This document shows positions 2,601 to 64,000 of a stretch of 64,000 bases of DNA, one piece after another; position 1 is the first letter of the stretch; each line of letters starts with the position of its first letter. The translations under genes were made by a program, and so were the position numbers. This DNA is from Pavona decussata (lineage: Eukaryota). Location: NCBI GenBank assembly GCA_977016875.1, contig CDRNST010000318.1, positions 1,612,001-1,676,000 on the forward strand, written 5' to 3'. A model generated the notes under the pieces. That model did not search any database, was not told the DNA's origin, and saw only the letters and a list, made by a program, of their open reading frames with translations.

Positions 2601-2744
2601 CCTGTTATGCGTTCACACAAGTCGTGAATATTAAATTGCATTGCTTCAATCAGAAGTACCCAACGACCCTTTTAGAGAAAATTAATCGTATATTGCACTA
2701 AACACTAGCTGAGTGTCCCTACGTCAATCTCGGTTACTATTTAA

Positions 2745-5600
2745 CGTTCCTGGGAAAAAAAGTTATTTACATAGAAGAGAAATAACATTGGGCCTAAAAT
2801 GGAGCCCTGAGGTATTCTTGAGCCAACAGGCAGAGTATCAGAGGTTTCATCCAGCACTGTTACACGTTGGTAGCGATCCATCAGGTAAGAGCTAAACCAC
2901 TGCAAGAGGCTGCCTACAAATCCGAACTCGTGAAACGTTTGCAGCAGGCAGCCGTGGTTCACCTTATCGAAGGCCTTAGACATATCCATACAGACACTGA
3001 TACAGATCATGTCCACCTGTTTTCCATCGTCTAGTAAGGAGCCCACGTGGTCCAAAACTTCTAAAAGGTTGGAGATGCATGGTTTCCCTCAAATAAATCC
3101 ATGTTGACAATCTCTTACCCCCCCCCCCCCGGGGGGGGGGGGCACTTGACCCATGTTTAGGTGCAGGGGTGCCGCTGGGGGTTTGAAACCCTGACCCTGT
3201 TTAGGACGAAAATAACCTTAAATCCCTACCCTGTGTAGGACAATGTCCTCAATTTTAAGACCCTATTTAGGACAGAGGACAACATCTAGCTCTTGTGTTA
3301 CACAAGTGTTTATTGGCAATAGTAATAACATTTAAAGGGCCACTGTCACTTACCGGACGTGATTTTCCACGCATTGAAACGCGAATACCAATTACAACCG
3401 ATAAAATAATACACTTCCTAGAAGTGATGGCGGAAAAGTCCCAAAATTTCGCATTAACAGCGGTGAACCTTAAGTGGAAACTCAATTGACGTGAAGCATT
3501 GCTCAGTAAAATAAATGCAGACTAACGTCTCTGATTTCGGATTGCCAAATACTCGACGACAGTCTTGCAACCATACCCTGTCTAGGACGGGTCCGGGACA
3601 GACTCGCTTGAAATTATATACCCTGTTCAGGACAGAGGGGCCAAAAACCATACCCTATCCAGCGGCACGTCCCCATATAGCCCATATAGGGGAGTACCCC
3701 CCCCCCCCCCGGGCTCTTACCACCTCGTACAGTATTTAAATACACATCGCTACAAGACTTTGGATACCAGTGGCAGTAAGGAGACGGGCCTGTAATTCTC
3801 TGTGCACTCGGCCTCACCCTTTTTAAAAACAGGAAGAAGCTGGTGCATTGGCAGCGCTTCCAGATGAAAGGGAGGGGGAGGAGGGGGTGTCATGGCCGAA
3901 AACTGATGCGAAGTAGGAGTTAAACAGATTGGCTATTTCCCGAGGATTTTCAGCTGAAGATCTTAACGGCGTACGACTACCTGGGTCAGTGGATGCATTG
4001 GCTGATATTGGCGTCGAGACTCGATCAGGAATAGTATGCGATTTGGAATTCAGCTTCAATATCGACAAAAAACGCTTTGGGTTTATGTTGAGTTCGGACT
4101 CGACGGAACCAAGAAACTCATCACGGCAGTGTTCCACAGCATGTACTTGTTTTAGCAAGTTTTTTAACTTCTCCCTTAGGTGGCTCGAGGGAGATAGTTT
4201 CAGCTTTTGTCTCATAGATTCGTTTTTCTTGATCAAATTAAGTATGGCACCAGACATCCAAGGTATGGGATTCCGTCCCTTAAGCCTGTTGGTCTGTATA
4301 TAGTCAGAGACCGCTACAAGAAACGTGTCTTTCCATTGATGCCAGTCTATTTATATCGTCATTGGCTATGATCAAAGAGAGGTTAATTGCTGACAGAGCC
4401 GTACACAGACCCTCAAAGTCGCCTTTTGCATAATCGCAGACAAATCTCAGGGTATTTGGTGGAGCTTTTATAAAAGCGTTAAACTGGAAAATAATGACGC
4501 TATGATATGTAAAAACCCCCGTATCTTTTGGAGACAATATATCGGTTACATTGAAACGGTTCGGCACGCTCGTGATTACAAGGTCAAGTATGACCCACCC
4601 ACGAGTGTTTTTTTATTGAGTTGTGTCAAGAGGTGGGCGTGAAGGGTTTCAATAAAGGCTAGTTCGTTAACACCCGATGCGCTGTCAATGGAGTCCCGGA
4701 GGATGTCTGGCAAATTAAAGTCACCCGAAATTAACATATTGTCGAACTGGTTACAAACTTCACGCAGAAAATTATCGAATACATCCATCCAACTTGGGCC
4801 TTCATTGGGTGGCCTATAGAAAAAAAAAACAGAATAAAATTATTTAACCAGTAAGCGTGGTGATTTTGCCAATGTTACAGCTCAGCTTCCGATTCAGGTT
4901 TAAATCCTTTGACAGCTTTTAAGGAGACTGTTTTGATTGCGATAAGAACTCCACCACCACCTCGATCAGACCGATCTCTCCTAAAAATTGTAAAGCCAAA
5001 ATGCATTATTTCAGAGTTGCTGATATTTTGGTTCAACCGTGTCTCATTGACACATAGAACGTCAGAGTTTTCGGCGTACGCCAGGTCCTGAAAGCGAAGT
5101 GAGGTTACACACGGATTGCCAGTTTGTTGTGCTGTCTTTGTGATAACTTTTTAAGCTTCTGGCATTCATCACGAGGCAATTGATCTTATCAGCAGTCGAA
5201 GGAGAAACCGGTCCAGGGTTAGGATTGATTTTACCAGACATCAAAAGGCGAAATTTAGCATCTGAGTTGTTGTTATAACAAACGTGGCACAGTTTCATTA
5301 CATGGCACAGTAACAAGTGTTGAAAATAGCAACGGCTTTCACAGAGTTCTTCGATTGACGACCTGATTCCCTTAACAATGTCAACAATCCATCGAAGGAG
5401 CAATCGTTCTCGGGAAAACGGCAATAAAAATTGTGAGAATGAAATAAGGTAAAACGAGTCCAAGACTAGCGGTACCTCCAAGACTACAGGTCGTTTGACC
5501 ACGAGTCATCCTTCTGTCATGATATCGTTTTAGCCCGTACGCATGCTCAAACCTCAAAACGTACCACATGGGAGACAAAATGACTACATTGTCATATATA
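2745..5600 (-). mobile_element. Degenerate non-LTR retrotransposon (CR1/L2-group, APE endonuclease + RT), 3'-truncated and frameshifted
   Basis: APE motifs CLVMNARSL, VNET, RRDRSDRGGGGVLIAIK, YRPPN and GDFNLPDI; RT motifs QHGF, DMSKAFDKVNHG and PQGSILGPMLFLFYVN. Many stops and frameshifts; breaks off before the YADD motif. Confidence 0.9.
3119..3713. mobile_element. Non-autonomous element with (C)n(G)n / (C)nGGG ends inserted in the LINE RT region
   Basis: Direct repeat CTCTTAC at 3112-3118 and 3714-3720. Removing the element restores the LINE reading LYEVVRDCQHGF. A decayed relative lies at ~913-1190. Confidence 0.8.
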
Positions 5601-18176: not shown

Positions 18177-19244
18177 TGTTTACTAGTATAAGTTGTGTTG
18201 CATCGTAAATTTACAATCCTCTATTGTCCAACAAAGTTCAGCTGTTTTCGAACATGCAGTGAAGTTTGAAATGCACGCGTCTGCTAACAAAGCATTTGAT
18301 TGGTGGAAAGTTTGTGCGCCGAAAATGATGCCAGCGGACACTGATCTACTTCATATGAAATGTCACGAAAAAAGGCTTCACAATAGCTCACTGAGCTTTG
18401 CAGGAGGTGAGTACCTTTTTAATCGTCTATTGATTTATGACCAATATATTTTATTAAAATACACAGACGTAATTTCATCACAATTTTATTTCCGTCAATA
18501 GCATCCTTACAAAATTGTTATTTTTAATTTTACACAGCTAAGTAAATTGGCCACCAATTTTACTAAATTACTACTTTAAGTAAGCTTAAAGTTAAACTAT
18601 GAAACAACTATTAAACAATTAGATAAGCTTATATATAGCTGAGCTAATATCAAGAGCCAGAAGGAATTTTATGGCCTAAAGCTTAATAAATGTACACTTA
18701 AACAATAAATTCTTATACAAAGTAAATATATTATTGACAAGATTTCACGGTTGTATATATTAAGTTACATAAGTAATTAAGCTTAAATAAATTAAATTCC
18801 ATATTAATGTTTTCATCACCATTTCACGTATCAATGAGTAATGGTATTAACACAAGATTTGTTTAGTGATGGGTAAGCCTGAACAAGGTCCCACCTTCCC
18901 CTATATGGAAATATAATGACATTTTTCATTTAACAGAGCTGACATTGACATTCTAACCTACGTATAACCATTAAATCTTTTCTCCAGTATCTTTGTGAAC
19001 ACATGATAAATTAACAGAATAAAACAGTTCCTCCTTATTGGCTTATTTTTACCTTTGAATATACATGTATAGCTTTTTGTCATGGTAGCTGAACTGTCAA
19101 ATAAACAAACAAGTTTAAAAAAAAACTAGGGAGGAGACTACTTATAAGAAACTTATAAATAGTTATAAATTCTTGATTTACACGTTACATCACAAATAGA
19201 TTCTTGTTATGCAAATACCAGTTTTATAACAACTGAGACTATAG

Positions 19245-22200
19245 CTAAAGTGTCAATTTTGCAACCCATTTTGACAGCTCTCTTCTAAACTGGGCCCAGT
19301 CCTCTAGTCCAGCAGATGCCACATTGTGCGTTGGAATGGCAGGATCTTGAACAATCGGCAACGTGAATAGAGCTGGAAAATTCTCACGGGGATAGTCATC
19401 TGCCAGGTAATATTCGTTCCAGAAAACTCTGATAAGAGACAACAACAATGTTCAAGTTATATATTAAGTAAGACTAATGATAAAATCTAAAAATCCTTGG
19501 TGGGATTTGAACTGCGACATCAAAAAATGGTTACTAGTCCACAACAGTGGACTTAAGTAACCATTATTTTCCAATCCACCCTGAGTCACTGAATTTTTTT
19601 CAGTGGTCAGGATTCCCAGTGTCGTTTTTATTACTTACTGATTTGTCAGAGGATATGCTAATTTCTTTTGTTTTAGTGTGGATTTTCTTGGAGATCTAAG
19701 AAGGGTCCTAGGAGGGTTAAAGAAAATCTTCTGAGAGTGTGACTTGTTAAACTTACTCAAGTGATTCATCTCCAACCATGTCTGCTAGTTCTAAGAAAAC
19801 ATCCTTGTCTGCTCTGACGGCTTGAGTGTCACCTCCCCTGCAAGAGTACAATGATAATTAATTATAATGATAGAACTGCCTGTTATGATGGTTTTGTAGG
19901 ATAAAATCAAAAGAAGCAACTGTTCACAGAAGCTCTCTGTGCTAAAATCCTTCAAACTGTAATGATTGTCAGGTTTAGAAAAACAACAACGCAAGTTTGT
20001 TCAAAATACATACTCATGAACCACTTGACAAGCAGCTGTGACCAGCAGTGACAGCAGGTACTGACTGGGTTTGGATGAGGAATTCCGCCAGGCAACTGTG
20101 TTACTCCACGCCTTTACAATACGGATCAGATCCTTGCACTGGCAAGAAAAGAAGCAATAATATCCCTATTTATCAGTAACAATAGCTAGTCAGTTAATTG
20201 TTATCAATGACAATTATAGCTAATTGGTTTATAATGCAGATTATCTTGTGCTCAAGAACTGCTTCACTTTACAACATCACTCAGTTTCTTTGAGTAAAAA
20301 GGAATGATAATAATTTAACAATAATTTTAAAATTTATAACGTGCAAGTATCTATATAGATATAATCAAATGTGCGATAAAATGCTGATGCGAAAATTAAA
20401 GTTAAAAGACAGACTTGTTCTAAAAGAAGTTGGCATAAAAAAGAGAGACAAAGTCTGTCCCATCTGTAGATGGTCAGTGGGGGTTATTTTCTCATCCTCT
20501 GACAATTTTGGCCTTAACAGAGGAAATAGGATATTTGTTGAAAACAGTAAAGCTAGTACAGTTTTGTTTGAAAGGGGCATTTGATGGCGATTTTTCTACA
20601 AGAAAAAACACAAGGAAGGAAGAAATTAATTAAAGGATCACATAGTAAGTAAAATACCTTTGAATTCTGCAGAGAAATGAACTCTGTTTGTCTCTCACAG
20701 GCTGAAATGTTGTAGCTGAGGAACAAACAATACAAAACTTAATACAAAACTTTCTTACTAAAGGAGGAAATTTAATGTGATGGACAATATTCATTTTTCT
20801 GAATATCACAATGGACTTCAACATAAAGTCGAAAGGTTCTTGTGGAGTACCAAGTTTCCTGTGATTAGCAGTTCTCATGAAATCAAAATATTTTTGTTGT
20901 GCATGTTCCTTTTGTTACTTAAATTAAGTTGTGGTCACAGACAAAACTTTCTACCCTCCCACCCCTTCCCCTAAACCCGCCCACGTGGGATGGGGTCCCA
21001 TCCATCACTACTATAATATACTCACAAAATCTGTGCATCCCCTGGCTGAGACAAACACTGTTTGTATAACCCTTTGAAGCCACCCAATGGTTCCCAGTCA
21101 TTGACTGGCATAACCACCACATTGACACTATCGCATTTGAACAGAACCGCTGTTTGAGTCGTCATGAAGTCTGAGCATGGCGGCAGTTTGCTGGCTGTAG
21201 GCTGGTCATCATTTGCGCTGTCGGCTGTTTTGGAGCCTTCTTGTTTCAGCAACGTTTTGATAGTGAATACTATGGCCGGTAACCAACTCTTATGTTCGGT
21301 TCTGGGAAGGTCTGAGGGATAAAATAGTTTATCGGTCAGTGCAGTTATTTGTACAATGAATGCTGTGCCGTTAGCACTAAGAACACAAATGATGAATCAG
21401 AGAATTAACTCGGCAGTGTACATGTGTGTTGTAGTGGGAAGTGAACCTTGGATTTCCCACTGAGCGTTAGCCCAAGTAAGGAAAATGGAAGATCACACGA
21501 GGCAAAGAAAAATATCTTCGACCTCGGCGGCAATTCAGCCCACAACATTGTCGCAATTACCAAGAAAAGCAATTGTTTTTTTTTTCTTGACTTTTCTTCG
21601 CTTTTTTGCCCGTTTCAACTTTCTCTTGCCTTCACCATCTTTCCTGTGTCGAAAAGGATGAAGTCATACCAAACATGTCTGCATTATACCTTTTACAAAC
21701 ACTGCCAAGTCTAGCTCCTGATATCCTTTGATGGTTGTTCCCTGCCCAGCTGCACCAACCACTGAAATGCGACTGATACTAAATGGTAACTGTTCCTGTG
21801 GCACGGACAAAAGACAAATTGAAAACGCTATCAACTGTTTATAGGTTCTCCTTCCCTTACTGTTATTCCTAGGGGCTGTTGGACCCAACTATGAACTGTT
21901 TCAGTCGTCCATGACGCCCGCCTTCCGGGCCTTAGGGGCTCTGTTGCCTCTTCTGTAGAAGTCTTATGGCTCTTAATACACTCTTTTCGTGAGGAAGAAG
22001 TGCCTATAGAGTATTTTTGCTGTGGATTGAATCTGGCCAAACCAAAGAACTAGTCGCAATTAGGAGAAGTCCAGACAGTTTTCAGAACTTCCATGCGCTT
22101 GACCCAGCCCTTTCCCCAGGAGAAAACCGTTGTTGCTGAAAGGTTTACCATTAATATGCCTTTGTATTCGCCAAGAGTATCTACACCCTCTTACCATCAA

Positions 22201-25200
22201 GAAGGATTTCAATTTCTCTGCAACGTCTTGTTGTTTTTGAAGTTGTTCTTCCTCGGGCTGAGCGTCTTGGACGAGATCTTTTATACTGCTTACTTTCTTT
22301 CCATCAATCTAGTCAGAAACGAAAAGACGAGTCGTTAACCATGAAAATGCTTTTTACAACCTGTCTGTATATTGCGACCAAATTGTGACGCCTGCTGAAC
22401 GAAAAACTATGCGTTATAACATCGGACATTTCTCTCTCACTTCACTTCACTTCACTTCACTTTACTTTACTTCACTCTACTTGACTTTACTTTATGAAGG
22501 CAACTGATAGAAGATAATAACCTCGTCAACAGTGCTCTCAATTTCCGCGAGGTATTCATTGCTTTCACTGATCTCATTCTCTAGCTGTTGAATAGCTTGT
22601 TCTTTCTGCTTCAGTTCCTCCTGCCTGGCTGCTATCTCCTCATCTTTGTCAGCCAGTAATTGATCTTTCTCGGCAGTCACGTCTTCCAGTTGAAATTTCC
22701 TGTCAAACAATGAAAATTGCGTCATATCAGATTCCTTGGAAGATATTCTACAGGATTCTTCTTTGATAACTAATTGTGGCAAAGACGTAGAGTTTCTAAC
22801 CTTACAAAGACGAAAAAACTAGTTTGATGTCGAAATTGTTACGTACCCCCCCCCCCCCCCTTCCTTTAAGGAGAGCTGCCTTTACTGTTGAAGGGTCCTC
22901 GGAAGCCGTGTATAGGGTTGTAGTTTATAAACTAACCGCGGACAAGCTTTACTCTTTTTCTCGGGAAAAAGTCATCATTTTGAGAATAGATTTTGAAACC
23001 TGTACACTGCATTATTCCCTGTCTATTTAGTATAATGATTTTGCGCTGCAGTTTTGAATTGTTCGAGTTGTATGATGAGGCTGGCAGCCGTTCCTTACCA
23101 CTGAAGTGATTAGAGGCGCTGATTCCCGGGTTAAGGTCTTCCAGTTGCATGTTCAAATCCTTGCCCGCACTTTTTAGACCAACAGCCCAGCTTTCCATGA
23201 GGTGACCTTCTTTTCGTTTGTTTATAATGCTGCCTCCCCAATTTGATCTCAACTGTTGAACTATTTTACACTTTGGAAACTATTAAATCCCCTATTTGTT
23301 AGAATGACATCGATATGCTTTTCTACCCCTTTTACCTGAACAAAACGTTTCCAAGTGGTAAAGCATGCGAACTACTCATCGGAAGTTCACAGGTTTGACT
23401 TTTGTTGGGAGAACTCCCGTTTCCTTTCTCCGAGTATACCTGACTGAAAACATTCCACAATCAAAACGTGTCATCTTACCAGAAATTTTCAAGTGCTGCT
23501 TTTGCTTGCGCGTTCATCTCTCTCAACTTAGCAACGCTGTGTTTGTCAGAGTTGATGAGAAGAGGGTCGTAAACTTCATTTGTGTTTTTGATGACCAACC
23601 TAACACACGCGTGTTTGTCATCATCCAAGTACGGGCTGTAAGGATTCAACACCTAACAATACAATGCAAAGTAGCATTCCGTTACTTTATTCAGTCACTT
23701 TCATGTTGCAAAATAATTCAAAAACAACGAGAGAAAGAAGTCAATGGAATTCTTGAAAAGAACAACTTGTGATCTGGTGTAGAGCATTTTGGAAACGAAA
23801 TTGCGCGAACTTGAAAGAAGTTAGCCAATCTTTTTTCAAGTTGCAATCTACTGATTTCAACCCAGTCCATTTGTGGCCAGACACAGCCGTCTACAGTTTT
23901 ATCCCTTCACAGGGCTACCAAGCCCGAGGAACTATAAGGATAGAAGTCTAACAGTGATCAGCATCAAATTTCGCCTGGTAACATCAATGCTTATACAACC
24001 CCTGAGGTCATGAGAATTTAGGATATGATCACCCAAGGTGAATTTTCTTGTTATTTTAATAACTTCTTCCCAGTAATTTTATAAGAAAAGTATGAGGATA
24101 AGATAGGAGAATTTGTTCTTTTATGTTAATAGTTAAAGGGTTAAATAAAATAATTTCATTCCATTTCCATCTCATAATTTTTATTCTGGTTTCTGTTGAT
24201 AGAAAACGTTTTGAGTTTTTGACGGTCCCCACGACACCGATGAAGATGTTGGGAAGGCAATCCTAATCAAAGTTTGAAAAGGGCAATCAACCAGATTTTT
24301 TCCGATTATAACGTACCTCGTTTAATTCCAAAGTTGTGTTCATGGTCATCTCATCCTGACTGTAACAAAAAGCACTTCTACCAGGAACATCCCACGAATT
24401 GACTGTCACACTTCTGTTGTCATCCTTGAAACAAAACACACGGACACTCCATAGAATCTTCATGTAATAAGCGCTGTCTTCCAAGTCTGTGTGTTTACTC
24501 TTCGGATCAAATATCAAGCTGAAATCCAGCGTTTTCTTGTCATTGGAGCCAGGCTTGAGAGCTAAGGGTGACACATCCTCTATAAGGCATTCATTTCCCA
24601 TGTTGTTTGGAGGAGACCAGTTTGCTGTGTCAAATCCGAAGTAATAGTAAGGGTCAATGCTGGTGATCTTGACGCCGACGGAAACCATACCGCCTTTAGA
24701 GATGGCCTTGAGATCTTTGGTGCGGACAAACTTCTCAATTCCAAACGCTGAGCTGGAATTGCTGTCGCAGAAATGATGACTCACCTGTACTTCACGGCTG
24801 TCGCGTACGAAGAGAGAATAAGTCGCCTTAAATCTTAACATGGAGGGTTCTTCTCTGTGCAAATACACCGCGGCATGTTCAGGATGTTGTTCAGCGTTGT
24901 TCTTGGGCTCTCCTTTGGGGTAGAGTACAAGGTACCATTGCTCGCCGTACAGGGAAAACCTTGAGCTAGAGACGTGGCTAGTACGGGATGACAAATTTAT
25001 GACCAATTTGTCTTCAAAGACAGTATTCACCATTGAGCATTTGATCTCAACAAACAAATTATTCTCATCCAAGAAGCCCGAGTCGGGCTTCTGAATCTCT
25101 TCGACTGGAACTAACTTACTCCAGCCGATTCCGAATCCAACTTTAGGGAACTCGTCGTCTTCGCTTAAGTTTCCAGCTCTCACAGACTTCGACGGGTCTC

Positions 25201-25453
25201 TGTGGTTGATAACTTCGGCAGAAAAGTTCATCTTGCATTTTACTTTGTCGGTGAACTGTCCGCCTCCGAGCCACCTTAAAAACACACCAAACTGTCCTCC
25301 CTTGACAGCGCCTTGGAGACGCCATCTACACCCGGAGAAAAAGAACGGCTTTGAGTACACATTCGCACCAATTTCGGGAAAGTCTTCAAAGATGAAACTG
25401 AAACAACCAATATTATCCTCGAGAATTCTTGTATTGTGCAATCGTAACGCCAT
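19245..25453 (-). CDS. MATH x3 - coiled coil - OAS-like nucleotidyltransferase-fold fusion protein; 10 exons, ~813 aa
   Basis: Phase-consistent GT-AG exons 25453-24317, 23652-23480, 22699-22522, 22308-22195, 21795-21690, 21311-21026, 20715-20658, 20138-20014, 19837-19757 and 19428-19245. MATH motifs SKPFFFSGCRWRL..FGVFL..FGIGWSKLV and FSLYGEQWYLVLYPKG..AFGIEKFV. OAS motifs VVGAAGQGTTIKGYQELDLAVFV, CERQTEFI, KDLIRIVKAW, PSQYLLSLLV, VFWNEYY and PIVQDPAIPTHNV. Confidence 0.85.
21425..21535 (-). mobile_element. SINE-like interspersed repeat fragment
   Basis: ttccttacttgggctaacgctcagtgggaaatcc segment; a related fragment with a B-box-like tcgaaccc lies at ~26590-26735. Confidence 0.4.
22437..22492 (+). 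repeat. (CTTCA/CTTTA)n pentanucleotide microsatellite
   Basis: About 11 imperfect units visible directly in the sequence. Confidence 0.9.
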
Positions 25454-26248: not shown

Positions 26249-26891
26249 ACACTTTATCCACGTTTCGCTCTTTAGAAATTAAAATTTATGAGTGGTTTTT
26301 GACAAATGGCAATTATCCTGTTTTTGGCCAAAAATGTGCTAAATTATAGGAATCGGTTCTATATCACTATAGGATGAAATTACGTGAATTTTCAAAGAAA
26401 GAACGAGACGTTTATAGACATAAACAATCGTGCCACGAGGACATCTCGTGATTGTGGAAATATTTTTTGTTCATATTTTGGGTTTCACCCAAACCAAACT
26501 CTCTCACAGCAAAGCTTTTGTTCGACGCCCAAATTCTGGAAATAAAACAGTTTATACTGTCGAGATATTGACAGTCGTGAATGATAAATCAGAGAATTAA
26601 CTCTGCAATGTAATGCTAAAGTGAAACCTTGAATTTACCGATGAGCGTTAGGCGTGGTAAGGAAAGGGGAGAATACACAAGGCAAAGAAAAAAGCGAGAA
26701 TCGAACCCACGATGTTCGTATTTGATCAACCAGCCATACCAAGGACAAAATAACAACTTCTCTGATAAATGACCAACATAATAAAGGTCAAAATTTAGTA
26801 CTTGCGTTATTATGATTATTATCATCATCATCATCATTATTTATTTTTATTTTTTTATTTTTTTCGTGCAATACCATAGGCGAAATCACGT

Positions 26892-38533: not shown

Positions 38534-42137
<3,604 letters not shown>

Positions 42138-47311: not shown

Positions 47312-50300
47312 ATGGCGAAAGCCCAACCAGCTGAACACAGAAGGTAATTTACCGAATTTCTGGTTATTGGAACTTGTCCTTCAGCAACTCTTTTGACAAA
47401 AGCCAAAGAAATTACCTAATTTAAAATTTGGCAGGCTGGTACCCATACCAGGGCACTAAAAAGGAGGTTGGTCAGGCATTCGTTTCTTCTTTCGTCAATT
47501 TAGCGCCCACCATTTTGTTTAAATGTATGCAGGGAGGCATAGGGAAAAAGCGCGGGAATTTGGCGACATGTCAAGCTTTCGTACATTGTAGGCAGTGTCC
47601 ATTAGGCCTTTCCCGACTGCGTTGGTAAAATCCTAAAGAAGTGGTCGAAAAAAATGCCCCAAAACGTGCCCAAAATGTCTAAATAGTGCTCAAAAGTTGC
47701 TCAAAAAGTGAAAAGTTTCCGCTAAGATTTTCGCTAATATGCACATTTTTACTACAGTAGTAACAATGTATCTTACAATCTATTTTTCATAACGTTAACT
47801 CAACGGGTTCTTGCGGAAGGTTGATAAAATATAAAAGATGTTTACTTACATAGAAAGTACACTTTAGCAATTCTCTATTACTAGTCGGTAATGCGATTTT
47901 CAGACTGGCGGATTTGTGTTTATTTAGCGGTCTTCATTCTGGTTTTTTTGTTTTGGCTGTCAGTAGCACGGATGAGGATGTCTTTTTTTCAGTGATGTGA
48001 ATGTGTTATGTAAAAAAACTTTACTATAAGAGGGTTTGGGTTAGGACCTAACCCTAACTCTGTACACCTAGGGAGTGGGGTACTCAGGTACATTATTGAC
48101 AAAGGGCTATAATCAAAGACTCGTTAGACCAACAAAAGCAAATATGGTTCAGAAATTAACCCCAAAAGGAGTTAAGAAGGAATCAGCTCCTGTCATCGCT
48201 TATTTACGTGAGGACTCCCCCCCCCCCCCCCCCCCAAACCTGGGACTGTATAAACACAAAATGTCTTCCAAAATGACATGGTTATTTTTCCTGGTGGTAC
48301 AGGTATGGCTCTACTGTGTCAACTGTATATGCTTTGACTGCAGAGCTACCAACCTCACCCCCTCAACATGCTGATGAAAATAGCAGTCATAATATTTTAT
48401 TCACGGAGCTTGTCTAGAAGTCTACTTTGGAGATTTTTTGATCGGTTAAAAAACTCTGCTGCGCCATGTTTTTTCAACCAACTTGTGGGTGTTTGGAAAT
48501 TGTATGAAACACTCTTTCTTTTATGAGGATATGGAGCAAATGTACTGTTTACTATAGAATCATTTCCGTAGCCTTAAGACCTCTGATGAGAACAACCTCT
48601 GATATTCCCTGCCACTTTCTTAGTTTACTTTCCATCCTGCACCAAGGATGATACTCGGTTAATGAAAAATTTTATTTCCTTTTTAGGTTTACCAAGTATG
48701 ATTTGCTTGCACTCTTGCTGGCCATCTTCATTCCAGTGATTGCTATAGTGCTGACTATGGTGGCAATTCTGCCGGCATTGGGAGCACCACCACTACCAAG
48801 CTTTGAGAAACCTACAAAAGTAAGCCAGTTTAAGGTTACTAGCAGCTAGGCCTGAGCATTATTAAAGTATTTTAAATTGTAATGAAGTATTCCCTAAAGT
48901 CTGCAGAATAGACCTATTCGGCTAATGCAATGTTGTACCCAATTCAAATCCTTTGGGGATAAAATGTTTTGTTCTAAGTATTTCCATATCATTTAAATGT
49001 GAATGCTACATTATAATGCAGATGCAATAAACAAAGAATCTTAACCCCGGGGGATCTGAATTGGGGTACAACATTGAGTTAGCCGAATGGGTCTATTGCA
49101 TTGCTCTTAGTAATTAAATATCTTATAGCCTATGCTACTCCAGTTTAATATATTTAATTCAGTTTTCATTTCTAAAATTGTCGCTCTTAAGGACGGCACC
49201 TCCTTTTGCTACTGCGCATGTATTCTGCGCATCTCATGATGGTCTGAAAAACTCTGATTTCTTAAGGACGAAAGCCACGCAATTCAAAGGTATTTTTGCG
49301 CAGTTTATGACTATGCAGGAAAAGAAGATTTTAGTAAGGGCTATTGAAATCCAAAAAGCAAATAATTGGGGGTAACCATACATTTTTTAGTAGAAAATTA
49401 AGCTACAGTTTGGGAAAAAATGCATACACGAACTATGTATTTGAAAGCTTTTTAGCATTATGTTATCTCTGAAAAATGCTTGGTAACCCCCTCTTTTCTT
49501 TCAGGATTAAAGTAGCTCTTACTAAGATCTTCTTTACCGGCCTAGTCATAAAGCGTGAAAAAAAACTATTGTCCTAGGAGGCACTGTCGTAAATTTTTTT
49601 TTTTTTGGTAATTCAACCAGCTCCTTGCCAGAGGTTTGAATTAACTGATTTTGTGGAAGATAGTTGTAGCTCCTTGAGAGCTTTATTCATCATTGCTTAA
49701 TATTTCCCAGGGATTTGAACCAAGAGGCACGGAACTGAGTAACCAGATTGTGACGGATGGGAATGTTCGAAAAGCACTGGGAAAAAAAACCCTCTTACGG
49801 AAACCTCCTAGAGCACAAGAATTATCTGAGGACAAAGCAAATAATGGTCTTGGTTCAGGCAAGCGCAAACGGCGCTCAGTGCAAAGTTCCCTTCAACCTC
49901 CTCTCTACGAAGGTTCTGTAATTGAGTCCATGGTGTTTGTCTACAAATCCTCAGACCCACATAAAAACTTGTTTGAGGCAAGCAAGCTTAAGACCATTTG
50001 CGCCATGGACACTAACATTGTACGCTTCCACCCATCTTTCAAGCAAAACTGTCTTTATTTTTTTAATAATGGATCTAACAGCCGGGAATGTTACTCAAGT
50101 TGGTCTTTGGGAAATTATGTCGCATTGCTCAACAACCGTGGAACTTGTCAAGATATAACTGATGATGATGTGTCAAAGGTGAAAGCGCTGCTGCAGAATT
50201 GTTCGTCTTATTTTGTCAAGCAGACGCTCAAGGAAGACTGCCGATATCCATTGGCAAATGAAACAGCCAGCTCAAACTGCCCATCAGTACCAGCGCACTG

Positions 50301-53300
50301 CATCAAACACAATGCAGTGTACAACATTTTCCAGTATCTTGTAGACAACGAGTTCATGACTATACCGGATCAATCTTTCCTCAAATACACTTTATCCATG
50401 CCACCTGTCTACTACGGGGTGGAGTTTTTTTATGAAGAGTTGTACAGCAAGTTGAAGGGCAGCACCAATGTCAAAGAGGGAGTTGAAATAGCGGCATTTA
50501 GATTTTGGAATTTTAAGTATGACAAATTTGCAAAGGAGCTCTTTGTTGAGATAATATTCCCTGCTCTTGCAATAATTGTTGTGTTTGGTGTCATGTGGTT
50601 TTTCCTTGGTTCTTTTATTCTCACTTTCTGTGGCCTTTTTTGTGTAATTTATGCAATTGGTCTTTCGTATTTTCTTTATAACGTTGTTTTCGGCATGGAT
50701 TTTTTTCCCTTTCTTAATGTCCTCACATTTGTCTTTTTGGTGGGCATTGGAGCAGATGATGCATTTGTGTACTATGACATATGGAGGCAGACACGGGCTG
50801 CAAACCCTAATGCAAACATCATGCAATTGACATTGAAGACTTTGCAATATTCTGCACTTTCCATGCTGGTTACTAGTTTGACAACAGCATCAGCATTTTT
50901 TGCTAGTATATCTTCCACCATTACAGCCATCAAGTGCTTTGGAATATTTGCAGGAACATCCATCTTGACAAACTATTTGCTTATGATAACATATTTCCCA
51001 GCCGTTGTAGCTCTGCATGAGAAGTGGGTGATGAAATACAGTGATGGTGAAAGCTCAGATGTTTCGCCTTCAGGTGAGCTAACAGATGTTGGAACTGCTG
51101 AAACTGTGGAAGCGCCAAAAGCACAAGACATGTCAGAAGGCAGAGAAGCGAACAAAAGCCATAAAACTCAAGAGAAGACAAGCTTCTGTATTTTACAGGT
51201 TGCTGATTTTCCATGCTCCCTTGCGGTATCAGCAATGGGTGCTGTGCAAAGATTTGGCTCCAAGATCTTTGGTCGGTGGTTGCCGTTCGTGGTTATCAAG
51301 TTTCACTGGATTTGGATAGCCCTGCTAATCTGTCTTACTGCTGGCTTTTTGTGCGTCAACTTTGTAAAACCTGGTCTTCACCTGCCGGAGAGTGATGAAT
51401 TCCAAGTATTTTCTGATTCGCATACACTGGAAAACTACAACTTAAACTACAAGAGATTCTTTCGGTTTGAGCAAAGTGGAAGTATGGAGATACAGCTGAT
51501 CTGGGGGATCAAACCTGTTGATAATGGTAACCACTTTAATCCAGATGACAAAGGAACCCTTGAATTTGATGAATTGTGGTCGTTGGGTGGTCTCCTTTCC
51601 ACAGAGGGGCAACAGTTCCTGCGCTCTCTATGTTCATCCGCTGAGAAGCAGTCATTCTTTGCTGCATTTTCTGGGGATTTGGGATGTCCAATGGAAGCAT
51701 TAATAACAGCGTGTGCCACTGGCCCCGATGCATGTTGTGGAAAGAATGCTAGCTTTCCTTTTCCGGCTGGTGTTGCTGAGAAATGTCTTCTAGCATTTGC
51801 ATTAAGTGGAGAGGAAACAGGGTTGCTGTTTGACGCTAATAGTGGAAAAGTGAAAGGTTTTAGAATGGGGATCATTGCAAACCAATCATTTACAACAGCC
51901 TTTTCTGTGATAGATGGTTTCTATGACACAGTAAATTCTTGGGTTAAAACTGAAATGTCCAAAGCACCAGCTGGATTGCAAAATGCTTGGGCAGGCAGTT
52001 GGGGGTTCAAGTTTTATGGCCTACAGATTGGCCTCTCGGAGGGCACCTATTCGTCATTAGGCATATCAGTAGCTGTATCGTTTGTTGTAATGTTGCTTAC
52101 AACACTCAACATCTTCATCAGCATCTATGCGATCATCACCATTATTGGAGTTATTGCAATCACTATTGGATCTCTGGTGCTGGCAGGCTGGCAGTTGAAT
52201 ATTTTAGAGTCTATTGTGATGTCAGTGGCTGTGGGGCTTTCAATTGACTTCACCATGCACTATGGCGTAGCGTACAGGTTGGCTCCTGATAAAAGCAATA
52301 AAGAAAGCAGGGTGCGCTACTCACTAGTGCACATTGGATCGGCAATCACCATGGCAGCGCTGACAACCCTTCTTACAGGTGACAAATTTTTTCATATTCT
52401 CTCTCGTTGCTTTCTATTCTTTTAAGCTGTTGACAATAATATTGCCATACAACATTGCATAACTCAGTATTATGTGGTTCCAGAAAATATCCTCCCTCCT
52501 ACCATAGAAGGTCATTACAAATTAAAGGAGATAAGGGGCCACAAGGACTAACGTTTTCCGAAAGGAAAGTATGAAGCTACGTTGTAAATTTCAGTGTAAT
52601 GGATATTTTTTGGAACAGTGCACTGCAGCTAGTCACAGAGCAGGGTACATTGACCTAAATTTGAATTTTTTTTTTCATAGCAAGACTAAGGGTGCGTTCG
52701 ATTGAACCTAATAAGATTATTTCGGGATAGAAATAGATACGATGCCTACCAAAAATCACTCAAAATGGCTCTTAAATTATTGCCGGTGTATCAGCGAAAG
52801 TTTTCAGATATATCTTCCCAAATTCACGTGAAAAGAGAAATCTAATAGCTATTCCGCTCAGTTATAGTCTTTTTCCGGAATATGGTCAATCAAACGCAAC
52901 ATTATATTCTGCAACCATCAGACTTTCTTAAGCCAGGTTTAATTATGCTGTATGATTTGTCGTCCTGGCAGTGTTGGAGCACAAATTGTACAGTGTATTT
53001 AGACACCCAATTTCGATTTTGAATTTTGAAGTTTGAGCAAAAGAGAGGCTGTCCACAGTCTAGTGACATCACCAAGTCTTCAGTTGCATGAGCAATGTCA
53101 GGCAAGACAGAATGCCTCTGGACTAGAATTAATTGTCTGTTTCCTTTGTTTCAGGCTTGATGATGATGCCTGCGACAGTTCTGGCGTACTTTCAGCTTGG
53201 TCAATTCTTGATGTTGGTCATGGTTTTCAGTTGGTTTTATTCCACCTTCATTTTCTTATCCATCTGTGCTGTGATTGGTCCAAAGGACAATTTTGGACAA

Positions 53301-58700: not shown

Positions 58701-61700
58701 AGCTTTGCGGACCCTACTAAAGTAAGCCAGTTTAAGGTTACTAGCAGCTAGACCTGCAACCTTTTTCCCAGGAAGAGGAGAGACCCTGGAAAAGGTTGTT
58801 AGGTCTGAGCATCATTGAAGTATTATGAATTCTTGTCAAATATTCTCTGAAGTCTGCAGAATTTCTTTGTTCTTAGTAAAATTCATCTTATAGCCAAATG
58901 TTACTCCATTTTAAAATATTGATTTCATAATTGAATAATAAAAATTATTTATTTCACTTTCTGAGTTTTTATTTTTCAGTTCATTTTTAAAATTGTTGCT
59001 ATTAAGGACGGTGCGTCCTTTTGCTACTGTCCATGTATTCTGCGCATCTCATGATGGTCCAAGAAACTCTGATTTCTTCAGGTTACCCTATACCTTCAGA
59101 GGTGTCTTCAGAGCTGTCTAGTGTCCAAGTGATGTAGCACGTCTGGTTTAAACTGTAGATACCTGACCCCTTATATCAAATTAAAGTTTATAGAGCTGGC
59201 TATCAAACTAAACCAAGAATTTTGAAATAAAAGGAATTGCCGAATTTTTAGTGCTGTTTTCTCGAATGAATTTTTTCACTTGGAGGAGCCACTTCCAAGA
59301 GCTAAAACTCAAATGGAATTTGTTCGTTTGCCTTCAAATTCGAACAGTAGCTAGTTCAACACATAAACAACAAAAACGTTTGTGTCTGCGAATTTTTCCT
59401 TTCGAAATATTTTTTTCTCCTAGAGCGATTTTTGTACGATCACTCCCCTTTTTTTTTTCATCCTGTTTCGAAAATGCTCTATAACTTTTCATTGCGATTG
59501 AATATGGCAAAACGCAAGCACGTTTTTTTAGCGCTTTGGGTCTGGAAACTGAGGAGCAAATTAAACTAGCAGAAAACAAAATTTGCTTTGACTTGTAGCT
59601 TTAAAAAGGTGATTCAGACGCTCGTATTGAGAGGTCGTGAAAAATTCGACAATTCATTTTATTCCAAAATTCTTGGTATACAGTTGACTCCCGATAACCA
59701 AGTTATTGGGAGTTGACTGTAGTTTGATAGCCTGCTCTACAAGCTTTAATTTGATATAGGGGTTTAGATATCTACAGTTTAAACTGGATGCACTACATCG
59801 CTTAAACGCGAGACACCTCTGAAGGTATATGGTAACCTTAAGGATGAAAGCCTCGCAATTCAAAGGTATTTTTACGCAGTTTATGACTAGGAGGAAAAGA
59901 AGATCTTAGTAAGGGCTATCGAAATCCAAAAAGAAAATAATAATTTTTGGGGGTAACCATGCACTTTTCAGAGAGATTTAAGCTTCAATTTGAGAAAAAA
60001 ATCCATACATGAACTATGACAGTATTTGAAAGCTTTTTAGCACTATACTATCTCTGAAAAATATCTGGTGACCCCCAATTTCCTTTTGGGATTTCAATAG
60101 CCCTTACAAAGATCTTCTTTTTCCTGCCTAGTGTAAACTGCAAACAAATACCTCTGTATTAGAGGGCACCCTCCTTAATACACATTGTAACTTTCTTTTG
60201 CATTGTTCCCCTACGTTATTTTAGTTCCATGTCAATACATTGATTTTCCTACAACACATATTTTTGTATCATTGTAACCAACCGACATGATTTAGTGTTT
60301 TCAAATTAATATATTTTCCCAAACTAAAGCCGTTGAATTTAACAAGATCCTTGCCAGAGATTTGAATTAACTGATTTTGTGGAAGATAGTTGTAGCTCCT
60401 TGAGAGATTTATTCACTGTTGCTTAATATTTCCTAGGGATTTGAACCAAGAGGCACGGAACTGAGTAACCAGATTGTGACGTTTGAGAATTTTTACCAAG
60501 CAATGGGAAAAACACTCTTAGGGTATCCTCCTAGAGCACAAGTATCTTCCCAGGTCAAAGTAAATAATGGTCTTGGTTCAGGCAAGCGCAAACGGCGCTC
60601 AGTGCAAAGTTCCCTTCAACCTCCTCTCTACGAAGGTTCTGTAATTGAGTCCATGGTGTTTGTCTACAAAGCCTCAGACCCACATGAAAACTTGTTTGAG
60701 ACAAGCAAGCTTAAGACCATTTGTGCCATGGACACTAACATTGTGCGCTTGGATCCATCTTTTAAGCAAAACTGTTTTTATTTTAGTGATGGAGTTAAAA
60801 CAGAATGTTACTCAAGCTGGTCTTTGGGAAATTATGTTGCATTGCTCAACAACCGTGGAACTTGTCAAGATATAACTGATGATGATGTGTCAAAGGTGAA
60901 AGCGCTGCTCCAGAATTGTTCATCTCATTTTGTCAAGCAGACGCTTAAGAAAGACTGTCGATATCCGTTGGCAAATGAAACAGCCAGCTCAAACTGCCCA
61001 TCAGTACCAGCGCACTGCATCAAACACGCTGCAGTGTACAACATTTTCCAGTATCTCGTAGACAATGAGTTCATGAGTACACCGGATCAATTTTTCCTCA
61101 AATACACTTTATCCATGCCACCTGTCAACTACCAGGTGGAGTTCTTTTATGAAGAATTGTACAACAAGTTGAAAAGCAGCACCAATGTCAAAGAAGGGGT
61201 TGAAATAGCGGCATTTAAATTTTGGAACTTTAAGTATGACCAATTCAGGAAAGAGCTTTTTGTTGAGATAATCTTCCCTGCTCTAGCAATGATTGTTGTG
61301 TTTGGTGTCATGTGGTTTTTCCTTGGTTCTTTTATTCTCACTTTCTGTGGCCTTTTTTGTGTAATTTATGCAATTGGTCTTTCGTATTTTCTTTATAACA
61401 TTGTTTTCGGCATGGATTTTTTTCCCTTTCTTAATGTCCTCACATTTGTCTTTTTGGTTGGTATTGGAGCAGATGATGCATTTGTGTACTATGACATATG
61501 GAGGCAGACACGGGCTGCAAACCCTAATGCAAACATCATGCAATTGACATTAAAGACTTTGCAATATTCTGCACTTTCCATGCTGGTTACTAGTTTGACA
61601 ACAGCATCAGCATTTTTTGCTAGTATATCTTCCACCATTACAGCCATCAAGTGCTTTGGAATATTTGCAGGAACATCCATCTTGACAAACTACTTACTGA

Positions 61701-64000
61701 TGATAACATATTTCCCAGCCGTTGTAGCTCTGCATGAGAAGTGGGTGATGAAATACAGTGATGGTGAAAGCTCAGATGTTTCGCCTTCAGGTGAGCTAAC
61801 AGATTTTGGAACTGCTGAAACTGTGGAAGCACCAAAAGCACAAGACATGTCAGAAGGCAGAGAAGCGAACAAAAGCCATAACACTCAAGAGAAGACAAGC
61901 TTCTGTATTTTACAGGTTGTTGATTTTCCATGCTCCCTTGCAGTATCAGCAATGGGTGCTGTTCAAAGATTTGGCTCCAAGATCTTTGGTCGGTGGTTGC
62001 CATTTGTGGTTATCAAGTTTCACTGGATTTGGATAGCCCTGCTGGTATGTCTCACTGCTGGCTTTTTGTGCGTCAACTTTGTAAAACCTGGTCTTCGCCT
62101 GCCGGAGAGTGATGAATTCCAAGTTTTTTCTGATTCGCATACACTGGAAAACTACAACTTAAACTACAAGAGATTCTTTCGGTTTGAACAAAGTGGAAGT
62201 ATGGGGATACAGCTGATCTGGGGGATCAAACCTGTTGATAATGGTAACCACTTTAATCCAGATGACAAAGGAACCCTTGAATTTGATGAATTGTGGTCAT
62301 TGGGTGGTCTCCTTTCCACAGAGGGGCAACAGTTCCTTCGTTCTCTATGTTCATCCGCTGAGAAGCAGTCATTCTTTGCTGCATTTTCTGGGGATTTGGG
62401 ATGTCCAATGGAAGCATTAATAACAGTGTGTACCACTGGCCCCAACGCGTGTTGTGGAGAGAACGCTAGCTTTCCTTTTCCAGCTGGTGTTGCTGAGAAA
62501 TGTCTTCTAGGATTTGCCGCATCAAGTGGAAAAGAAACAGGCTTGCTGTTTGACACTGATAGTGGAAAAGTGAAAGGTTTTAGAATGGGGATAATTGCAA
62601 ACCAACCATTTACAACAGCCTTTTCTGTGATAGATGGTTTCTATGACACGGTAAATTCTTGGGTTAAAACTGAAATGTCCAAAGCACCAGCCGGATTGCA
62701 AAATGCTTGGGCGGGCAGTTGGGGATTCGGGTTTTATGGCCTACAGATTGGCCTCTCAGAGGGCACCTTTTCGTCATTAGGCATATCAGTAGCTGTATCG
62801 TTTGTTGTAATGTTGCTTACAACACTCAACATCTTCATCAGCATCTATGCGATCATCACCATTATTGGAGTTATTGTAATTACTATTGGATCTCTGGTGT
62901 TGGCAGGGTGGCAATTGAATATTTTAGAGTCTATTGTGATGTCAGTGGCTGTGGGGCTTTCAATTGACTTCACCATGCACTATGGCGTAGCGTACAGGTT
63001 GGCTCCTGATAAAAGCAACAGAGAAAGCAGGGTGCGCTACTCACTGGTGCACATTGGATCGGCAATCACCATGGCAGCGCTGACAACCTTTCTCACAGGT
63101 GACAAATTTTTTCATATTCTCTCTGGTTGCTTTCTATACTTTTAAGCTGTTGACAATAATATTGTCATACAGCATTGCATAACTCAGTATCAAGTGGTTC
63201 CAGAAAATATCCTCCCTCCTACCATAGAAGGTCATTACAAATTAAAGGAGATGAGGGGCCACAAGGACTAACGTTTTCAATGGAAATTATGAAGCTACGT
63301 TTTAAATTTTAGTGTTATGGATATTTTTTAGAACAGTGCAATACAGCTAGTCACAGAGAAGTGAACATTGACCTAAATTTGAAATTTTGTTACACAGCAA
63401 GATTAGGGTGCATTCGATTGACCCTAATAAGGCTACATTTATTCCGGAATAGAAATACATGCGATGGCTACCAGAAATCACTCAAAATGGCTCTTAAATT
63501 ATTACAAGTGTATCAGCCAAATTTTTGAGATACATCTTCCCAAATTCATGTGAAAAGAGAATAATTATTGTAATAGCTATTCCACTCAGTTATAGTCTTT
63601 TTCTGGAATGTGGTCAATCAAATGCAACCTAACATTCTTTACTGCAACCATCTTCTTAAGCCCGGTTTAGACGGTACGATTTGTCGGCCTGACAGTGTAG
63701 GACCACAAATCCACACAGTGTATTTGGACACCCAATTTCGATTTTGAATTTTGTTTGAGCAAAAGAGAGGCTCTCCGCAGTGTAGTGACATCACCAAGTC
63801 TTCAGTTGCACGAGCAATGTCAGGCAAGACAGAATGCCCCTGGACTAGAATTAAAGCATTGTCTGTTTCCTTTGTTTCAGGCTTGATGATGATGCCTGCG
63901 ACAGTTCTGGCGTACTTTCAGCTCGGTCAATTCTTGATGTTGGTCATGGTTTTCAGTTGGTTTTATTCCACCTTCGTTTTCTTATCCATCTGTGCTGTGA
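55766..64000 (+). CDS. Dispatched-like 12-TM SSD/RND protein, copy 2 (3' end beyond the window)
   Basis: Exons 55766-55803 (MGKVRVGCSPNL, phase 2), 58589-58721, 60437-63098 and 63881->64000. Highly similar to copy 1 with the same motifs. Confidence 0.9.
56867..57303. mobile_element. Tc1/mariner/pogo-like deletion derivative nested in another repeat
   Basis: TACCG...attattcgagggagg left end and attattcgaggaaatacggTA right end; flanked by attcagacgccg / cggcgtctgaat inverted halves of an older element. Confidence 0.5.
58757..58798. mobile_element. 42-bp mini-MITE with ~9-bp TSD (MuDR-like), copy-2 specific
   Basis: caaccttttt-cccagg ... cctgg-aaaaggttg flanked by ctagacctg / ttaggtctg; copy 1 has a single ctaggcctg at ~48846. 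Confidence 0.7.
59081..59837. mobile_element. Kolobok-like MITE with ~130-bp TIRs inserted at TTAA, copy-2 specific
   Basis: ggttaccctataccttcagaggtgtct ... agacacctctgaaggtatatggtaacc-TTAA; empty site cttaagg at ~49261 in copy 1. Confidence 0.85.

Follow-up and report, generated by a model that had tools for sequence, protein, structure and literature searches.

In a gene of the stony coral Pavona decussata, MATH domains and a coiled coil precede an OAS-like domain that is probably a pseudoenzyme. The gene lies on the minus strand of a 64,000-nucleotide (nt) window of contig CDRNST010000318.1, to which all coordinates below refer (position 1 is the first letter of the window), and it encodes 813 amino acids (aa), counted from the first Met of its first coding exon, in the order MATH domains, coiled coil, OAS-like domain. 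We favor a pseudoenzyme because the third metal-binding Asp of OAS enzymes is replaced throughout the clade to which the gene belongs, no other acidic residue appears to stand in for it and the P-loop drifts, while purifying selection and transcription persist. An earlier interpretation made from the letters of the window alone (the sequence-only reading) had likewise called the domain a probable pseudoenzyme, and on these grounds we uphold that call. We infer both a loss of catalysis and an adaptor role, and regard the gene product as most likely a non-catalytic sensor or adaptor.

Active-site residues

In OAS1, D75, D77 and D148 are the metal ligands and are needed for the synthesis of 2'-5'-oligoadenylates (PMC6019448). 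The coral domain retains the first two, a [DE]-x-[DE] pair, as E-L-D, has Val in place of the third carboxylate, and carries Ala where the P-loop of OAS1 has the GS serine, S63. The sequence-only reading had described just these changes, GS to GA, D-x-D to E-x-D and third Asp to Val; aligning the domain with OAS1 of human and pig and with intact relatives bears them out, and its coordinates for the E-L-D and Val codons (Table 1) proved exact when the DNA was read again. Judged by its residues, the domain lacks two defining features of an active synthetase, and hence we do not class it with the OAS enzymes.

The assignments in exon A are direct. Against human OAS1 it aligns without gaps, VVGAAGQGTT on KGGSSGKGTT and ELDLAVF on DADLVVF, with A15/A16 on S63/S64, Q18 on K66, E27 on D75 and D29 on D77. 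Glu at the position of the first ligand is compatible with activity in cGAS-type enzymes. Exon B, by contrast, has no direct match in PDB or Pfam, and the D148 assignment therefore goes via intermediate relatives. Searching 1.84 billion representatives with a profile built from 15 orthologues of exon B (A1) brought up an OAS of Oscarella pearsei (P0019, 9e-11), a MATH-OAS protein of Mnemiopsis leidyi (P0026) and an adenylate-kinase-OAS fusion of Branchiostoma (P0022), together with exon-sized matches; P0019 in turn matches pig OAS1 (9.4e-13), its YDVDLLPTYD falling on VEFDVLPAFD. Compared profile to profile, the coral clade (A3) and the intact family (A4) match with a probability of 99.84% (E 3.8e-30), and this comparison sets Val on the invariant Asp, Ala on the GS serine, and E and D on the D-x-D pair. 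In a 35-row exon-B alignment the block F-K-C-x-x-x-x-V-[V/D]-x-x-P-x-x-D-W is ungapped and therefore leaves no room for an alignment shift at the D148 site.

Could another acidic residue have taken over? The sequence-only reading had singled out the Asp residues of KCD and VND as ones that might occupy the D148 position; neither does, and the Val stands. The KCD Asp, tried as a migrated catalytic residue, aligns to a Gly, Ser or Ala turn position in intact relatives, and we rejected it because its place is a hairpin turn and P0027 has it alongside the catalytic Asp (CDGLDIDL). In the structural model of the orthologue L014, described below, C-D falls at the turn between strands 130-134 and 137-145, and the Val lies inside strand 137-145. 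The VND Asp was rejected as the family-wide Asp of P-x-x-D-W, present in OAS1 too, and the N/D two places before the D148 site as a position that varies among N, D, K and I and is not conserved. From these alignments, it appears that no other acidic residue replaces the third Asp.

Membership of the OAS superfamily

The domain belongs to the OAS superfamily: it has both the OAS1_C lobe and the N-lobe fold of a Pol-beta-type nucleotidyltransferase (NTase). Exon F alone passes Pfam OAS1_C (PF10421) with 27.1 bits against a cut-off of 19.9 (E 3.8e-6), and the C-lobe motifs LIRxVKxW, QY and DPAxPxxN are present; exon A alone, searched against PDB, finds OAS1 as its sole match (4ig8 residues 51-82, E 0.028, ungapped). 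The N-lobe fold was assessed on L014, standing in for the window protein. The AlphaFold model of the L014 N-lobe has a predicted local distance difference test (pLDDT) of 90 and a predicted template-modeling score (pTM) of 0.82, the residues of exon N1 form its helices 9-16 and 20-40, and its top Foldseek matches are pig OAS1 (3.6e-6), the DZF domains of NF90/NF45, OASL, OAS2, OAS3 domain I and CdnC. The L014 N-lobe matches CdnC and OAS1, and the CdnC match fits the reported nesting of the OAS superfamily within the bacterial clade C of cGAS/DncV-like NTases (PMC10732462). Other searches were blank: exons A, B and N1 had no Pfam match, exon B had no PDB match, the exon-B profile A3 found in PDB only matches at chance level (for example Als9 and Cdc45, E above 0.2), and neither the exons nor the L014 open reading frame (ORF) matched the DZF family in Pfam.

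Distribution and history of the changes

In the 35-row exon-B alignment, the third-Asp site is V, T, A or S in 18/18 coral-like sequences and Asp in 15/16 sequences outside the coral-like clade, including those of Oscarella, Geodia OAS1Aa and the Mnemiopsis MATH-OAS protein. These 18 fall into a single clade (ultrafast bootstrap 100, Shimodaira-Hasegawa-like approximate likelihood ratio test 99) on a long stem of 1.23 changes per column, a pattern that fits one loss of the third Asp with rapid change thereafter.

The P-loop tells a more graded story among the loci with recoverable exon A. It reads GAAGQG in the window, L001-L003, L017 and L019, GAVGQG in L005 and L014 and GASAQG in L024, so that all of these have Ala at the S63 position, and all carry E-L-D on the carboxylate strand; L008/L009, with GSAGQG and E-V-D, alone keep the serine. 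Every clade member with readable exon A has lost the third Asp, and all have Glu in place of the first Asp except the divergent MATH-linked relative L010, which has DAYGQN and Q-C-N. Because the L008/L009 lineage keeps GS, the serine was lost after the third Asp, and in some lineages only. Such step-wise drift of motifs is the pattern expected once catalysis is no longer selected.

Two relatives deserve separate mention. L010 (Logan contig, L010:2178-3606) has very short introns and has lost every catalytic motif (DAYGQN, Q-C-N, and VIVSL with Ser at the third site), keeps the OAS1_C motifs and the domain order, and may be an orthologue or a paralogue. In amphioxus, P0022/P0033 (Branchiostoma lanceolatum CAH1264557.1, annotated 'AK5') has three adenylate-kinase domains and a C-terminal OAS-like domain with G-S, D-V-D and Thr at the third-Asp site; this loss is independent of that in the coral clade and belongs to a different fusion. 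A word search with Oscarella P0019 returned 5 proteins, none of them a coral transcript.

Selection

The ratio of nonsynonymous to synonymous substitution rates (dN/dS), computed from per-exon codon alignments and summed over the seven OAS exons, is 0.106, 0.080, 0.075, 0.075 and 0.086 against L003, L001, L002, L005 and L008, respectively, at synonymous divergences (dS) of 0.18 to 1.3. This strong purifying selection indicates that the domain is functional as a protein. The invariance of E-x-D, at 75-100% overall identity, is weak evidence for a role of the E and the D.

A probably non-catalytic domain and alternative readings

Why would such a domain be kept? In the mechanism that we consider probable, the carboxylate ligand of the catalytic metal (D148 of OAS1) gave way, from the clade ancestor onward, to small residues that are either hydrophobic or polar, and the lineage of the window lost the P-loop serine as well. 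Two-metal nucleotidyl transfer should not occur without the third ligand, and the domain would probably be retained for a binding or conformational role. Output may then run through oligomerization of the coiled coil and the TRAF-like MATH domains, in place of a nucleotide second messenger, as the architecture alone suggests. The domain may still bind nucleotides without turnover, as some DZF and MiD51-type proteins do, since it keeps E-x-D, the Lys that matches K213 and Q-Y. We take the Lys of LIRIVKAW, the Gln-Tyr and DPAxPxxN to be OAS1-type contacts, the Lys and Gln-Tyr being those that contact ATP in OAS1.

Several considerations weigh against a pseudoenzyme. L010 is the only clade member without E-x-D, the Lys and Gln-Tyr just mentioned are retained, and one lineage keeps G-S; as far as its residues indicate, the pocket is not fully degenerate. 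Structural inspection covered the N-lobe, a carboxylate from elsewhere in three dimensions might reach the site, and the case for catalytic loss is argued from residues.

The sequence-only reading had gone a step further and proposed a catalytically dead scaffold that binds double-stranded RNA (dsRNA) and acts like human OASL. We consider this rather unlikely. The domain does have an OAS fold, with the OAS-like domain of OASL among its top structural matches, and it retains the two Lys of K-x-K-x-LIR (the K204/K206 region of OAS1); OASL itself shows that a dead OAS-like domain can signal (PMC6307210, PMC6019448). However, R195 and K199, the residues of the dsRNA groove in OAS1 (PMC6019448), correspond to T and S in an ungapped alignment via P0019 to pig OAS1, and the summed charge of the OAS exons in the window is -7, compared with +3 to +8 for the intact domains of Oscarella, Geodia and Mnemiopsis. 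The OAS-like part of the triad-deficient amphioxus P0022 sums to -6, and intact sponge relatives likewise have no basic residues at R195/K199. The proposed RNA-binding role thus finds no support. The likeness to OASL holds as an analogy, in that a dead OAS-like domain is fused to a signaling module, but not for the partner, which is an N-terminal MATH array with a coiled coil instead of C-terminal ubiquitin-like domains.

That the domain is still an enzyme, with a non-canonical active site built from E-x-D and a water, a backbone atom or a distant residue and perhaps with a changed chemistry or product, strikes us as distinctly improbable. The clade-wide retention of E-x-D, the K213-equivalent Lys, Q-Y and DPAxPxxN, the G-S of L008/L009 and the strong selection on the domain would all suit it, and migrated catalytic residues do occur in some nominal pseudoenzymes (PMC10211241). 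Yet the third Asp, a required metal ligand (PMC6019448), is there in all but one of the 16 outside relatives; within the clade its site is free to vary and the position two before it is not conserved, the KCD Asp is at a turn, and L010 keeps the same domain order without any catalytic motif. Finally, a decaying or mis-assembled gene, for which the altered motifs and nothing beyond them would speak, can be rejected with near certainty, given a frame intact over 10 exons, the same substitutions in many independent assemblies and transcripts, dN/dS of about 0.08, spliced RNA contigs that cover the gene, and the natural ORF of L014.

Comparison with known systems

The closest functional parallels to a non-catalytic coral domain would be human OASL (PDB 4xq7), OAS2 domain I and OAS3 domains I/II, which like it have an OAS fold with a degenerate metal-ligand triad inside a larger signaling protein and are retained under selection. 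In the coral domain one of the three metal ligands is lost and two are kept as E-x-D. OASL has two C-terminal ubiquitin-like domains and binds dsRNA via a basic groove, whereas the coral protein has N-terminal MATH domains and a coiled coil, is net acidic and has no R195/K199 equivalents; it ends 60 residues after the OAS1_C motif, and tandem ubiquitin-like domains are absent. By analogy, the coral protein may work most like OASL or the accessory domains of OAS2/OAS3, yet it is not an OASL. OASL proteins have been described to switch between enzymatic and non-enzymatic signaling modes with the triad residues (PMC6019448).

The DZF domains of NF45/NF90 (ILF2/ILF3; PDB 4at7-4atb), at ranks 2-8 in Foldseek, share the OAS-like NTase fold, a likeness that is structural only: their domain partners are different, and the coral exons match OAS1_C, not DZF, in Pfam. 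DZF domains lack catalytic carboxylates and act by dimerizing. Going by their PDB titles, the NF45/NF90 entries include complexes with ATP, UTP and CTP, an indication that some DZF domains bind nucleotides.

A counterpart with the same architecture exists in a ctenophore. Mnemiopsis leidyi P0026 (member P0034 = KAL5263144.1, a 978-aa 'hypothetical protein') is collinear with the coral protein through MATH domains, linker and OAS-like domain, with BLASTP matches in the MATH region (9e-18) and in the linker plus N-lobe (5e-21), and it matches MATH_2, NTP_transf_2 and OAS1_C in Pfam. Unlike the coral protein, it keeps the complete catalytic set, G-S, D-I-D and L-D-V-D-L-I-P, and has a net charge of +5, so that by its sequence it is a natural, active-looking counterpart of the coral gene. 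The tree is compatible both with a common descent of the MATH-OAS fusions and with two origins. More distant are the OAS proteins of sponges (Oscarella P0019/P0046 and Geodia barretti OAS1Aa, P0049) and vertebrate OAS1, which belong to the same superfamily and share the LIRIVK and VQDPA words, but have no fusion partner and keep G-S, D-x-D and the third Asp intact.

Gene structure and transcripts

The gene is real and transcribed. Tracking the phase exon by exon, we found 10 coding exons (Table 1) with GT-AG at every border, consistent phases and a single terminal stop, as expected from the otherwise intact reading frame that the sequence-only reading had noted. Among the Logan contigs of public runs (recruited on 19200-25199), one of 2412 nt (X1 record 3) joins M, cc1, cc2, N1, A and B at exactly the modeled borders, and others join D, E and F; every joint has CT..AC on the plus strand and thus GT..AG in gene orientation. 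A transcript fragment (P0014/L004) joins exons B-C-D. L014, a Joint Genome Institute (JGI) metatranscriptome contig from a related coral, has a natural uninterrupted ORF (L014:1064-3157) that covers MATH domains, coiled coil and N1-A-B before it stops in a retained intron. Sequence searches were made exon by exon, with this naturally spliced ORF as stand-in for the N-terminal two thirds of the protein; the exon-B profile search of the representative library found coral matches as exon-sized ORFs only and no full-length coral protein.

Table 1. Coding exons of the gene and active-site features, in window coordinates
Feature	Position (strand)	Content	Support
Exon M	24317..25453 (-)	First coding exon, 379 aa from first Met; MATH/TRAF-C-like domains	Pfam MATH_2 1.1e-21 (2 stretches), MATH 1e-9; donor site at 24316 confirmed by spliced RNA contig
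Exon cc1	23480..23652 (-)	Linker	In spliced contig X1 record 3; GT-AG borders and phase checked
Exon cc2	22522..22699 (-)	Coiled coil	Weak, coiled-coil-type Pfam matches; joint 22308/22522 in RNA contigs
Exon N1	22195..22308 (-)	OAS-like; N-terminal helices of NTase lobe	Joints 22308/22522 and 21795/22195 in RNA contigs
Exon A	21690..21795 (-)	OAS-like; P-loop VVGAAGQGTT (GAA codons 21756-21748), strand ELDLAVFV (E-L-D 21717-21709)	Conserved in orthologous loci
Exon B	21026..21311 (-)	OAS-like; reads FKCDSVNVVVMPVNDW	Joint 21311/21690 in RNA contigs
Exon B hairpin		FKCD-SVNVVVMPVNDW; Val at D148 position 21117-21115; turn Asp (KCD) 21132-21130; N-D of P-x-N-D-W 21102-21097	
Exon C	20658..20715 (-)	OAS-like; helix matching the OAS1 R195/K199 region (here T, S)	Joined to B and D in transcript fragment P0014/L004
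Exon D	20014..20138 (-)	OAS-like; LIRIVKAW (K213-equivalent Lys 20114-20112), PSQYLLSLL (Gln 20063-20061)	Joint 19837/20014 in RNA contigs
Exon E	19757..19837 (-)	OAS-like	Joints 19428/19757 and 19837/20014 in RNA contigs; conserved in orthologues
Exon F	19245..19428 (-)	OAS-like; DPAIPTHN motif; stop codon 19247-19245	Pfam OAS1_C

Two introns show unusual RNA depth. In the M/cc1 intron (23800-24200), summed contig depth is 20,000 to 116,000, compared with about 20 on exons, in four RNA-type runs, with many loose ends at 23948 and 24121; this peak resembles a genome-wide transcribed repeat of about 170 nt, matches nothing in Rfam and is the sole copy in the window. An interspersed repeat lies in the A/B intron (21370-21600); it recurs at 26580-26692 with 75% identity and twice in the orthologous locus L003, and its depth is high in coral metatranscriptome runs. 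Rfam and repeat scans of the gene region gave no explanation for these peaks.

Significance

Cnidarians, including corals, have OAS genes and have neither interferon nor RNase L genes in a published survey (PMC6307210). Inactive signaling domains of the OAS family are known in vertebrates, in OASL, in the accessory domains of OAS2/OAS3 and in DZF proteins, and the coral gene would add a cnidarian case in which an OAS-like domain is coupled to a different output module, MATH/TRAF-C with a coiled coil. It is a candidate component of coral antiviral or stress signaling, and it offers a system for studying how an OAS-type enzyme becomes an adaptor, with a ctenophore relative that has the full catalytic set. 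Quite tentatively, we speculate that MATH-OAS fusions are an old, pre-bilaterian wiring of an OAS-type sensor to TRAF-like signaling, and that in corals the enzyme became purely a ligand-gated adaptor through a transition like that of OASL, arising independently in animals without interferon or RNase L. If so, the ctenophore-coral pair would be a natural comparison of active and inactive forms. We found no paper on MATH-OAS fusions or on the coral pseudoenzyme, in a literature search whose incomplete coverage does not prove novelty.

Other features of the window

Further open frames lie elsewhere in the window. Judged from their translations, ORFs at 2744-5505 (-) have reverse-transcriptase-like and endonuclease-like wording and are probably the remnant of a retrotransposon lacking long terminal repeats (non-LTR). 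An open frame of 318 aa at 41184-42137 (-) has a cytidylyltransferase-like motif and resembles ethanolamine-phosphate cytidylyltransferase. Two long and closely similar open frames of about 900 aa each lie in tandem at 49678-52422 and 60437-63142 (+).

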